NCBI RefSeq assembly: GCF_006345805.1
Contig: NW_021832120.1
Span: 314,694-378,693 of the forward strand
Length of the DNA: 64,000 bases
Direction: 5' to 3'
Source: Octopus sinensis
Taxonomy: Eukaryota
Below are positions 3,346-59,150 of the stretch, in pieces. Positions within the stretch are counted from its first letter, which is position 1; each line of letters begins with the position of its first letter. The position numbers and the translations under genes were made by a program. The notes below the pieces were generated by a model, which was not told the DNA's origin, made no database searches, and was given only the letters and a program-made list of their open reading frames with translations.

Positions 3346-3900
3346 TCAACAGGAGCCATATTCATTGATCCAGTTCACATACTTGACCAAATCAGCTGAT
3401 GATACAGTTTTGTTTAAATTTTTAATGGCACTGCGGAGATCGTCCATCACCATCGGGACATTCATTTCGTCCTTTAAAATGAATTTCTTCTCGTCAACAA
3501 AAATAATGCTGGGCACATAAAATCTGGCCTATTCGATCAAACAAAAACAGCCGACCATATCGAAGAGTAATTTTAACAACTTTTGAGACTTTTCGTGCCA
3601 CTTTGAACTGATTGTCGAAGAAGAAATGTTAAAAAATATCATCTGACATTCAGTCGCCACTGCCTTGGCCAGCAATGTCTTTCCATTACCTGGCGGACCC
3701 ACCATAAGGACTACCTGCCCACTAAATATGACCAAATCACCTTATAAGGACGTTTTATTCCAGTAAACAACTATGGAAAGTGCTGTGGAAGGATACTCCC
3801 TTCTCTGAGCAGTCTCTTTGCATCGGCCAGCCGAAAATATCAATTACACACTGGTCGTGTCCCTCCCCAATTAAAATCAACGGGCAAACCTCTCTACTTG
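3346..3900 (-). pseudogene. KATNA1: Katanin p60 AAA ATPase pseudogene with internal deletion
   Basis: [45 protein letters not shown], then directly the C-terminal EMNVPMVMDDL...KYVNWINEYGSC*. In-frame TAG, frameshifts, and two retained 26-27 nt introns. Confidence 0.85.
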
Positions 3901-4291
3901 AAATTGTACCGTACTACGCACATTTATAGACTTCATCAATTAAAGAATTATTTCTGTTTGGAAGATGATTAGTGGTCAGATGTAATAAAGAATAATTGGT
4001 GGTGGTTGTTTTCTGTTGGGATTGTCGTCTAATGTGTTTTCTTTTTGATTTTCTGTGATTTTTTTGATTTTTTAAAGAACTTTGCTAAGCTTCACAATAC
4101 GCATAAGTTTCTCAGTTTTTAATATTTAAACAGTATAATCTTTCTCTAAAATATTTAACTAATTGTTAATATTGATGTACAAAATAACTATTTATATATT
4201 TCGTTGAATATATCGAAAGTTTGTGTTTTTATACAATCAAATTCCTCACTCATCCACAGGTAAATTTTTGCTTTTATTTTTCCGTAGGTGT

Positions 4292-5666
4292 TAGTCCGTT
4301 TCACAGATACCCCGAATTGGGGCAGACCCCAGGGGTGGGGCACCCCCGCATTTTGGGGCACTTTTTTTTGGCCAACATTTTGGCAGAGTAAAATGGAAGA
4401 TCGATAAAAAATACGGAAATTTTGGGGCACTATAAAATTGTAGGGAATGAAGTAAATAAAATTATATTTTATTAATAAATACATAATTTAAATTTACACG
4501 TTTACTTACATTTTTTTGTTGTCAGTGGTTATAAACTACGAAACAAACAAAATTAAAGATTGCTAAATTGATATCGAAGAAAAAATTATCTGAAAGACAG
4601 ATAATTCAAAAATATAAAACTAGCAAAGGCATGATTTCACGAATAAAAAAAACAATTGTGCTTTTTCTTGAACAAGGAACTGTAAACACGGATGAAGATC
4701 CTATGCCTTATTGTGAGAAATCGAAATTTGATGATCAAGTTTTTGAAATATTTCAGAAACTACGGGAAGATAAAGTTCCAATATCAGGTCCTTTTATAAA
4801 GAAAATCGCCTTATATACGGCTTCAAAGATTGGATTTGATTTTTTCAAAGCTTCAAACGGCTGGCTTGACAGATTCAAAAAGCGTCATGAACTGAGATTC
4901 AAATCAATTTGTGGAGAGAAAAATTCATCTGACTTAATCAATGAGTTTTTTAAAATCCTTGACGAGAAAATTGCGGAATATGGAAGAGGAAATGTTTTTA
5001 ATTGTGATGAAACAGCGCTTTATATAAAAAGGACACCGAGAAAGTCGTTTGTCGGAATAAATGACGATACTTTTGGCTTTAAACAGGGAAAAGAAAGAGT
5101 CACCGTACTTCTTTGTTGCAATTCTATGGGAGAAAAACTTGAGCCATTGATTGTTGGAAAATTTAAAAACCCTCGATGTCTCAAAAATTCTGCTAATTTC
5201 TAAAAGCTGGGAAAAACTTGATCCGAGTTTAATATTTAATTGTTGGAATCAAATTGAAAAGATTCGTGATTCCGTAAGAATTGAAGATAGGATTACAGAA
5301 GAATTAATCAACAATGCCGTAAACGAAACATTGGATGGGGAAAATGACGAATTCGTCGATGATATTTATAACGAAGGTTTAGAAAACGATAACATGGAAA
5401 CAAGTCTAAGAGAAACGCAAGATTCTCTTGATCAGTTAGAAAAGAACATTTTTCACATATCTCCTGAAATGCTCAAAGAATTTTACGATTTTTGACTTAA
5501 TTTTATGAAAAATGTAAGAAGTAAGAGGAAAACTGGGGATAAATTAACTGATTATTTTTCTAAAATTGATTTTTGATGTTTAAAAATCTCTGTTTTATTA
5601 AACCCCTGTTTTTGTGGCACCCCCGCTTTTTGGGGCACTTGGTTCCCCAATTCGGGGATCGGACTG
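4292..5666 (+). mobile_element. pogo/Tigger (Tc1-mariner) element, internally deleted
   Basis: ORF 4568-5203 has a CENP-B-like HTH (FKASNGWLDRFKKRH) and DDE_1 start (FNCDET); TIR core CCCCGAATTGGGG at both ends; right end followed by TA; left TIR degenerate. Confidence 0.85.
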
Positions 5667-5859
5667 TAATTAGAATCTATCAGAAAATTTTTTAAAAAAT
5701 TATCGACTTGTACATAATTATTTTTTAAAAAATAGATTCTAGATCAGAAAATTGTTGTTAACATGAATATTTAAGTCAAAAAAACGAAATTTGATTCACA
5801 GCCAAAGCTTGAATGGTTTGATAATTCCAAGATAAACCGAGGTTAGAAACATCCTATGC

Positions 5860-6620
5860 CGTAATTTTAATTTTTATCTAAAACAAATAGATCCCAATGA
5901 TTATGAAATTACAAACAGAATAAAATAAACGTTCTCAATGCTTGAATATCATCTAGGACACAATCCACCTGATAATTTTCTTCAAAGTCTGATAATCAAA
6001 CACCTGGAAAATTTCAAGAAAAAAATTGATGATTACTTTCCTGATAAAGATCCAATTATAAACTGGATCTTTCAACCTTTCTTGACTTCATTTAAAGAAT
6101 ATCAGGAACTCAATTATCAGCTTAACTTGATTGTCTGCTCAAATTATTTTCAAATGTACTTTATTATTGGATTTTTTGTATTCTCATTAATAATTACTTC
6201 TACATAAATATTACTTCTTATTTTTTAATCTCAGTTGCGAAAGAATTCCCCATTTTGAGTAAAATTGCATTGGAATCAAAACTTGTATTCACAACTACTT
6301 ATCACTGTGAAATGGCGATTTCATGGCTGACTTTTCTAAAACAAAAAATAGAAATAGACTACACAAAAATAGAGCTTGACATAAGTAAAATTATTCTGAT
6401 AATTTTCATGTTTTTTTGTAATTAAGTTTTAATAAAAAAATCTAGCTATTAATATTCATGTTATTTTAAATAATAAATAATCAAAAATTTATAAACCTTC
6501 CCCTGACGAAGCCAAAAATTGTGCGCTAATAGCAAAAAAAATTATTTTATTTAAGGTGGTCCCAACAAAATTTTATAGTACAAAAGTGGTCCCCAGTCTA
6601 AAAAAAGTTGAGAACCGCTG
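5860..6620 (+). mobile_element. hAT (Buster/Charlie-like) 3' remnant
   Basis: HLENFKKKIDDYFP...WIFQPF and KEFPILSKIA...TTYHCE; ends in GTTGAGAACCGCTG terminal repeat at 6620. Confidence 0.7.
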
Positions 6621-57851: not shown

Positions 57852-57859
57852 GTATAGAG

Positions 57860-58690
57860 GGTCTTTTTGGAAAACAGAATAAGCAAGTAGAATTTGTTGA
57901 CATATTTAAGATATCAGGATTTGTGTGATCACCTGACAGTGATGAATGGGAAGTACGAAAGAGAACTGACTCAGCAGATCTCGGAAAAGAAATACATCAC
58001 GGAATATCTTAAAATGAATTTGCAAGGAAAGGGTTTGGAGTCGATGATCTAAAAAGGCCTTGAAATCTACGAAGTGAACACCAAATTGTCAGCGCTGAAA
58101 GAAAAGGAGAGACAGGCATTTTAAGGACAGCTGAGGCAGCTCAGACAAGAGTGTCGAAAATATAACATTGGGTACTGTGGCCGAGTGTATCTTAAGCCGG
58201 AAAATTGGCTTTGCTTGAGAACTTTAAAATCCAAAAGGAGGAAATTCTTGACAAAATGAGCAAACTAGAAAACGACATTCAGGAAAACGAGTTCAAGAGA
58301 AAGGAGGAGTTGTGCGAGAAAGTGTACGAGTTCTTGAATATGGTATTAATATTTTAATTTTTGTACAAAAGGAATATAATTCAGAGGAATACCAAATCGG
58401 CAAAGAGGAATTGAGTCATCTTTTGCTGTCACTGCTGTCTTTCAAGTACTCCATGGGAGTCTTTGACAGTCAGACCGAGAAACTTTATAAACAACTGCAA
58501 TCACTGGAAGAGACGAAGGAGTAGTTCTGCATGTTCAAAATAGACTAACCCAGCATCAAATCGAAAAAAACTTTCATTACCGAATTGGAGATCCTGGAAT
58601 GGTCCCGCCGAAAGACAGAATACTGACGAAAAGTATTGAAAAACAGAAATCGCAATTGCTGGGGAACAATCGAGTCTACACAAAATACTT
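57860..58690 (+). pseudogene. CFAP157: Coiled-coil ciliary protein pseudogene fragment, CFAP157-like
   Basis: YQDLCDHL...KKYITEYLK...GLEIYEVNTKL..KEKERQAF*GQL and ENITLAGKLALLENFKIQKEE resemble CFAP157 from memory; 24-29 nt introns, stops, small deletion. Confidence 0.6.
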
Positions 58691-58699
58691 GGTGAACAA

Positions 58700-59150
58700 A
58701 ATAGCAGAAAATCACAGTATCTGGGAAACCTGAAATTCGCCCCATCTCCATTTTTTCAGACTTGAATCTCCCACGTACTCCTAATTGGCCATCACCACAT
58801 GTAGACGCTCTAAGCAGACGACTGGCATAACTAAAATACAGCAAACCCACGTTAATTCAGAGTGTAGCCATTCCTGTGGCCTTTTCGGGTTACAATATGG
58901 TTGGGATAGCACAGACTGGGTCGGGGAAGACATTGGCTGTTTCATTCCCTCGGTGACTTTCTTTAGTATTTGATTCCCCCCATGGATCATATTGCTAGCA
59001 TGTCCCCTGTACGGAGAGGCGACGGTCCAATCGTTGTGTAGTATTTCAAGGTTCTAGTGTTGGTGCCGACCACGGAATTAGCTCAGCAAGTGAAGTGCAG
59101 GCTTACTAAAACATTTGGTTTGTTTCTGGAATTAGTTTCCCTCAAAATTT
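58700..59150 (+). pseudogene. DDX5: DDX5/DDX17 DEAD-box helicase N-terminal pseudogene fragment
   Basis: KITVSG, PTLIQ, MVGIAQTGSGKTLA-YLIP, RGDGPI-VLVLVPTTELAQQV; TAA stop; introns of 30, 28 and 18 nt; truncated after motif Ia. Confidence 0.85.

Follow-up and report, generated by a model that had tools for sequence, protein, structure and literature searches.

Intron-bearing gene relics in dicyemid-type DNA of the Octopus sinensis assembly look like decayed segmental duplicates

At least seven disabled gene copies that retain very short introns lie among transposons in a stretch of 64,000 nt filed under Octopus sinensis (GCF_006345805.1, NW_021832120.1:314,694-378,693; hereafter the window, to which coordinates refer unless another locus is named). 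On balance, we favour reading these relics, which derive from katanin p60, GAR1, Elongin A, XPNPEP1, MTG2, a CFAP157-like gene and DDX5, as non-processed pseudogenes within a mosaic of small segmental duplications of different ages. The set looks like ordinary decay of duplicated DNA and not like the product of a new gene-fragment copying system, and the DNA that carries it most likely comes from a micro-intron animal, a dicyemid. An initial annotation of the window, made from the sequence alone, had named the same seven genes as broken copies with micro-introns; all were located (the Obg copy being closest to human MTG2), and they are indeed interleaved with transposons, lying between pogo, Merlin, hAT-like and long interspersed nuclear element (LINE) sequences. 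Relics were placed by Pfam searches (of concatenated open reading frame [ORF] pieces and hand-spliced models), PDB searches and tblastn. Pfam gave no hits on the concatenated plus-strand ORF pieces, and hand-spliced models were required. Two ORFs of the window, looked up by exact sequence, matched no existing record. Comparisons were made with four loci, all from GCA_006345805.1: L001 (VCDQ01004456.1), L002 (VCDQ01000373.1), L003 (VCDQ01004651.1) and L004 (VCDQ01006421.1). Their source contigs are 66-959 kb long, that of L001 being 959 kb.

The CFAP157-like and DDX5 relics, which lie side by side in the window, have an intact counterpart on L001. A protein search with the CFAP157-like sequence returned a single match, of 82% identity, annotated as "DDX5 [Octopus sinensis]" and located on the L001 contig. 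Window 55436-56267 together with 57868-59095 matches L001 8488-12791 in gene order, orientation and intron positions, with identities of 89-94% in BLAST and of 91-98% over aligned bases in six blocks. The match includes an upstream flank (window 55436-56267, L001 8488-10070; 91-96% over aligned bases) that holds an old reverse-transcriptase fragment at the same place in both loci. On L001, the CFAP157-like gene runs for 413 codons without a stop and has six introns (24, 24, 25, 25, 60 and 29 nt), and DDX5 is complete, with all helicase motifs (DEAD, 164.5 bits; Helicase_C, 120.7 bits) and eight introns, one of 103 nt and the others of 23-27 nt.

Against this intact state, the window copy shows several kinds of damage. 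A transposon insertion of 1.6 kb takes the place of 267 bp that hold the CFAP157-like start codon and first exon. The remainder of that relic keeps two introns (24 and 25 nt), carries a change of GAA to TAA at 58122 and has lost 6 nt, 28 nt and 620 bp in separate deletions; another 560 bp is missing from the spacer between the two genes. The DDX5 relic retains only the Q motif to motif Ia and ends after 59095, whereas the L001 gene runs through motif VI. It carries a change of CAA to TAA at 58828 and a change of PTRELA to PTTELA, and its second intron measures 18 nt as opposed to 26 nt on L001. One intron of 24 nt is conserved base for base between the two loci. The nonsense changes proposed in the initial annotation are real, and two show directly in this pair: CAA to TAA is a transition (C to T) and GAA to TAA a transversion. 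The CFAP157-like gene, too, is confirmed as a broken copy by comparison with L001, but its name, given for a resemblance to CFAP157, was supported by neither Pfam nor PDB. Both copies close the CFAP157-like frame at a shared TAG (L001 11657; window 58522), and 3' of it, in another frame, lies a conserved stretch of about 65 codons free of stops (VVHIQNRLTQQQIEK...), which may be an additional exon, mark a site of frameshifting or form the genuine C-terminus.

The pattern of substitution agrees with one live copy and one dead one. Over the codons shared by the window and L001, the proportion of synonymous differences (pS) is 0.069 and that of nonsynonymous differences (pN) 0.0275, a pN/pS of about 0.4 from small counts, which fits one constrained and one relaxed copy. 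Divergence of the DDX5 pair from L001 is approximately 3.5%. Differences between the two loci comprise 55 GC-to-AT changes and 23 AT-to-GC changes, and transitions at CpG sites are entirely one-sided (13 versus 0, towards the window copy); the overall CpG observed/expected ratio is still 0.90. The one-sided CpG transitions may mean that methylation and deamination of cytosines affect the dead copy and not the live one.

GT-AG introns of 22-29 nt are present in every relic, and the absence of parental introns that defines processed pseudogenes does not apply, with those of the DDX5 and CFAP157-like relics standing at the L001 positions. Judged by gene structure, the copies were made at the DNA level, because introns were retained and are placed as in the intact L001 copy. 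What is seen instead matches non-processed pseudogenes: the exon-intron structure is kept, disabling mutations and relaxed constraint are present, and for the CFAP157-like and DDX5 pair an intact candidate parent with a colinear neighbour and flank exists on L001. Retroposition, including LINE transduction, was rejected as a source of the relics, since introns are retained, poly(A) tracts are absent (no A-run occurs in the translated flanks after the stop codons of the katanin and XPNPEP1 relics) and the LINE next to XPNPEP1 inserted very recently. The earlier conclusion that retained introns exclude retroposition thus stands.

The other five relics differ widely in completeness and decay (Table 1). 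The best protein matches of the katanin relic are katanins, at 72-75% identity, and it corresponds to homologue residues 254-349 and 483-531 of 531, with 133 residues lost in frame at the junction between IFVDE and KKF. What is left of the AAA domain starts upstream of Walker A and reaches Walker B, where the reading frame continues directly into the C-terminal helix; a TAG lies at about 3773 within the conserved P-E-F-F, the Walker A and GESEK motifs are altered, and both introns (26 nt, 3740-3715; 27 nt, 3555-3529) are clean and of phase 0. The GAR1 relic retains the entire Gar1 domain and the RGG tail, with one micro-intron (13047-13026) and a TGA in both the core (13056) and the tail (about 12821). 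In the Elongin A relic, a TFIIS-N-like domain in which TAG replaces a conserved Trp (28064) is followed by the Elongin_A domain, and two introns of 24 nt are present (27697-27674 and 27581-27558). A 71-nt inverted match of 92% joins 4005-4075, just upstream of the katanin relic, to 48881-48951, about 1.2 kb downstream of the MTG2 relic, and probably represents a small repeat family.

The XPNPEP1 relic retains its catalytic and metal-binding residues and is interrupted by seven or more introns of 24-27 nt. It has lost its first 88 residues or so and about 45 residues around 34480-34420, including the NGAIIHY region, and carries two stops in its 5' exons (35302 and 35296); a third stop, read after HEG in the initial annotation, falls inside a 26-nt intron and is not a nonsense change. 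Near 34892, a frameshift falls within an A-run and may stem from a sequencing error, in keeping with the earlier caution that some homopolymer indels may be such errors whereas large deletions and stops are unlikely to be. A second partial XPNPEP1, with 73% nucleotide identity to the window copy, was observed at L002 10001-12442. It spans residues 1 to about 370, has apparent frameshifts and runs straight into a Ku70-like gene, with which the public annotation fuses it as one protein. Such relics are therefore not restricted to the window.

The MTG2 relic is heavily damaged, with seven in-frame stops in about 160 codons, compared with two in about 500 for XPNPEP1 with its catalytic residues kept; a P-loop Gly is changed to Arg and the N-terminal Obg fold is gone. 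Where the relics have stops, their homologues have W, E, A, H, L and G; the stops are therefore mutations, not signs of a variant genetic code. Ciliate germline DNA or a reassigned code was rejected on the grounds that the stops align to many residues and not consistently to Gln or Trp, and that no in-frame stop interrupts the intact L001 DDX5 or the transposon ORFs, which reach 555 codons. Internal deletions, which the initial annotation had proposed, are clear from the 620 bp missing from the CFAP157-like relic and the 133 residues missing from katanin. Its description of the copies as fragments does not suit Elongin A, GAR1 and XPNPEP1, each of which is a near-complete gene.

Table 1. Features of the window, in order of position. 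ORF, open reading frame; LINE, long interspersed nuclear element; LTR, long terminal repeat.
Feature	Position	Strand	Basis or remark
Katanin p60-like pseudogene	3349-3830	-	Pfam AAA 6.6e-18 and Vps4_C
Pogo/Tc5-type DNA transposon	4311-5657	+	HTH_Tnp_Tc5 and DDE_1; G/C-rich terminal repeat motifs
GAR1 pseudogene	~12700-13190	-	Pfam Gar1 positions 3-91 of 92, 1.3e-11
Second pogo-type element	13835-15325	+	DDE_1, 2.4e-27
Presumed non-LTR retrotransposon remains	20000-23100	-	Long N-terminal ORF 20841-21653; PHD finger 22679-23089
Transposon copy	23569-25235	-	93-96% identical, inverted, to 56260-57858
Elongin A pseudogene	~27230-28154	-	Pfam Elongin_A 1.1e-12; PDB 8oev 5.6e-16
Reverse-transcriptase fragments	31.5-32.2 kb; 45.5-46.3 kb		
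XPNPEP1 pseudogene	33681-35414	-	Residues ~89-593 of 593
Very young LINE	35804-38824	+	AP endonuclease and reverse transcriptase
Second LINE	39826-42493	-	AP endonuclease and reverse transcriptase; two ORFs
MDH1-like reading frames	42904-43921	+	Full-length alignment to cytoplasmic malate dehydrogenase; PDB 7rm9, 7.5e-11
tRNA-Phe (GAA)	44200-44271	+	74.6 bits; sole Rfam/ARAGORN result in the window
MTG2/Obg-type GTPase pseudogene	~47040-47700	+	Human MTG2 residues 181-344, 6.6e-32
1.6-kb transposon insertion	56268-57867	+	Not on L001; second copy at 23569-25235
CFAP157-like pseudogene	57868-58712	+	Coiled-coil gene; intact homologue on L001
DDX5 pseudogene	58786-59113	+	Pfam DEAD positions 1-69 of 167, 1.5e-16
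Merlin (IS1595-type) transposon, apparently intact	60829-62244	-	Terminal inverted repeats

Dicyemids are kidney parasites of cephalopods, and a genome of dicyemid type combines extreme gene loss with 27-nt introns; that of Dicyema japonicum has a strongly reduced set of 5,012 genes. About 30 introns of 22-29 nt were counted across the window and L001. Among animals, introns this short are known only from dicyemids, for which the published median is 27 nt, and from myxobolid myxozoans (PMC6543705, PMC13644364). The genome of D. japonicum, a species collected from O. sinensis as host, contains many LINE copies; its GC content is 36.7%, repeats account for 49% and genes occur once per 13.5 kb (PMC6736024). 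The window, with a G+C content of 34.7%, is in line with these published values in intron length, GC, repeats, gene density and LINEs. The four comparison loci carry compact genes with 23-29-nt introns, among them six genes within 24 kb of L001 and, on L003, glutamine synthetase and a U2SURP-like gene, both split into small exons; neither the window nor L001-L004 showed a gene built like those of the octopus. The public annotation nevertheless calls their proteins octopus (e.g., XP_029656824.1, XP_029657553.1, "DDX5 [Octopus sinensis]" and "xaa-Pro aminopeptidase 1-like"). By these sequence characters, we take the window and L001-L004 to be dicyemid-type DNA inside the octopus assembly. A myxobolid source was judged less likely: myxobolids share the intron length (PMC13644364), yet no myxozoan was among the relatives matched, GC and repeat load are closer to Dicyema, and the nearest sequences come from the octopus sample.

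According to the reading that we favour, short chromosomal segments with one or two ordinary genes would be duplicated as DNA, through recombination between repeats or through break repair. The redundant copies would then lose function and decay by GC-to-AT-biased substitutions (nonsense changes included), small and large deletions and transposon insertions. We infer that the other five relics have the same origin as the CFAP157-like and DDX5 pair. The times of arrival or death would differ between copies, since decay has gone much further in MTG2 than in XPNPEP1 or the DDX5 pair; with decay varying so strongly among relics, no single synchronous event explains all of them. The initial annotation had itself named colinear parents, the mark of a simple decayed segmental duplication, as a result that would refute its reading, and L001, the sole candidate parent locus found, is colinear with the window in gene order and upstream flank.

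Several observations weigh against this proposal. The initial annotation had suggested a genome-wide search for intact parents; of the seven relics, two alone proved to have an intact counterpart (the CFAP157-like gene and DDX5, both on L001), and no close relative of the other five was seen: tblastn against L001-L004 gave no counterpart of katanin, GAR1, Elongin A, the C-terminal half of XPNPEP1, MTG2 or the MDH1-like frame, and protein searches with relic exons returned nothing closer than about 50% (XPNPEP1) or about 75% (katanin). An intact XPNPEP1 was not seen, the L002 copy being truncated as well and only 73% identical. Colinearity with L001 extends over only about 4.3 kb, stopping at about 55436, inside the old reverse-transcriptase fragment, and at 59095. 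The hAT-like piece that follows DDX5 on L001 has its window counterpart some 40 kb away and inverted, at 16.2-17.3 kb. Finally, the two loci could belong to separate dicyemid species infecting one host, or to separate haplotypes, and would then not be paralogues in one genome.

This last point leads to the alternative that the genes decayed in place. The window would then be the original, allelic or orthologous block of one dicyemid lineage or haplotype that is no longer maintained, whether as a non-recombining or silenced region or through the unitary pseudogenes of reductive evolution, with L001 as the version of a healthy haplotype or a co-infecting species. Several of the genes are near-complete and resemble a compact block, with minus-strand genes to the left and plus-strand genes to the right; the flanking DNA common to the window and L001 and the confinement of CpG decay to the window copy also favour this view. 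However, the GAR1 and DDX5 families are expected to be indispensable, and functional copies must therefore exist somewhere. In addition, neighbouring relics differ strongly in their decay, and colinearity with L001 is lost within a few kilobases on both sides. We regard decay in place as unlikely, if worth keeping in view.

The active fragment-copying process proposed in the initial annotation fared less well. In such a process, gene pieces would be captured and reinserted by a Helitron or Pack-type transposon, by LINE transduction or by reintegration of small circular dicyemid DNAs. Circular DNAs with a median of about 700 bp have been reported in Dicyema (PMC6543705). Unrelated gene pieces of 0.3-1.7 kb do sit among transposons in the window, and a LINE 3' end just upstream of XPNPEP1 and a reverse-transcriptase fragment upstream of MTG2 each share the orientation of the gene. 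Yet no convincing terminal inverted repeats (TIRs) flank the relics, where only 19-24-nt inverted matches of 83-84% complementarity, a chance level, were found and where no search was aimed at Helitron ends. No relic is repeated within the window in a protein-level self-comparison, no poly(A) tract was seen after gene ends, several of the genes are near-complete, and the LINE beside XPNPEP1 arrived very recently, being 99.7% identical to other copies. DDX5, moreover, was copied along with its neighbour gene and upstream flank, as the colinear L001 locus shows. Capture and reinsertion thus appear improbable.

Even less probable is integration of dicyemid DNA into the germline genome of the octopus, followed by decay there. 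The nearest public sequences are filed and annotated as O. sinensis, the relic genes are dead, and CpG-biased decay affects the window copy only. Against this, the apparently intact Merlin transposon of the window depends on micro-intron splicing and therefore belongs to a micro-intron host, the young LINE has near-identical copies beside intact housekeeping genes with micro-introns, and neither the window nor the comparison loci, with the six compact genes of L001, resemble octopus DNA in gene structure. If true, this explanation would mean that tens of kilobases had passed from a parasite to its host, both of them animals. Least probable of all is an assembly or sequencing artefact that broke normal genes, to which the A-run frameshift lends itself, since most lesions are stop substitutions, changes in conserved motifs or deletions of 28-620 bp and a related contig (L001) has the undamaged state.

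The transposons among which the relics lie are of several kinds, and all long standard-code ORFs in the window are transposon derived. Five GT-AG introns of 22-26 nt interrupt the gene for the Merlin transposase, and splicing them out raises its Pfam IS1595 score from 28.9 to 69.2 bits; on this gene structure, the element is a DNA transposon adapted to micro-intron splicing. The first pogo/Tc5-type element has a 95.5% identical copy on L002. The very young LINE is 99.4-99.7% identical to copies at L003 9821-12571 and L004 3820-6845, the L003 copy (99.7%) adjoining micro-intron genes, and a search with its protein returned fragments of 94-100% identity, all labelled Octopus sinensis. This LINE abuts the truncated 5' end of the XPNPEP1 relic, and its final 695 bp is inverted and placed at the front of the element, an arrangement that twin priming yields. 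The remains at 20000-23100 are presumably those of a non-LTR element; C-terminal motifs of the restriction-like endonuclease type occur elsewhere in the window. Two direct-repeat pairs were observed in AT-rich DNA (51063-51585/53643-54146 and 15540-15827/17550-17816; about 2-2.6 kb apart, with identities of 82-84% and 96-97%), as was a tandem 70-nt duplication of 96% identity at 11911-12050, also AT rich.

Two intact host genes had been claimed for the window, and these were not confirmed. What was found is a tRNA-Phe gene and the divergent MDH1-like reading frames, which had no Pfam hit and have lost both the NAD-binding motif and the catalytic residues (His, Arg and Asp). The MDH1-like frames could represent a pseudo-enzyme (MDH1B-like) or, alternatively, a relic staying open by chance.

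For genome biology, the result is a modest one: in a genome of dicyemid type, dead duplicates of housekeeping genes can still be recognised among active transposons. Such relics bear on how dicyemid gene counts and completeness scores are read. The most useful by-product, which perhaps outweighs the relics themselves, is that contigs filed as octopus are an unused source of dicyemid sequence. We found no publication reporting dicyemid-type contigs in the octopus reference assembly, and contigs of up to about 1 Mb filed and annotated as octopus can mislead comparative work on cephalopods.

Among known systems, the window can be compared with the non-processed pseudogenes of human pericentromeric duplication mosaics, in which exon-intron structure is likewise kept and unrelated pieces of mixed ages are juxtaposed in transposon-rich DNA. 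A candidate parent locus with colinear flanks is a further likeness, here for one pair only; the window differs in that its pieces are tiny (1-8 kb) and its introns measure 22-29 nt. Capture by Pack-MULEs, other Pack-type elements or Helitrons also places intron-bearing fragments of unrelated host genes next to one another among transposons, but the window relics have no convincing flanking TIRs (Helitron ends were not searched for), several are near-complete, and DDX5 is still accompanied by the gene that naturally adjoins it and by the flank upstream. In degenerating non-recombining chromatin, such as Y, W, neo-Y, B and germline-restricted chromosomes, neighbouring genes similarly die by stops, deletions and transposons while functional copies exist elsewhere. 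Dicyemid sperm and eggs, however, come from one hermaphroditic gonad (PMC6736024). Unitary pseudogenes of reductive parasites share the setting of gene relics in a parasite with a reduced gene set, but at least two of the window relics have an intact copy, and neither GAR1 nor DDX5 is likely to be dispensable. Parasite contigs in host assemblies offer a parallel in that dicyemid-type contigs are filed under O. sinensis, the host of D. japonicum, although this likeness concerns the source of the sequence and not the origin of the relics. The relics of the window are a fresh example of a familiar type of feature, in an unusual genome.

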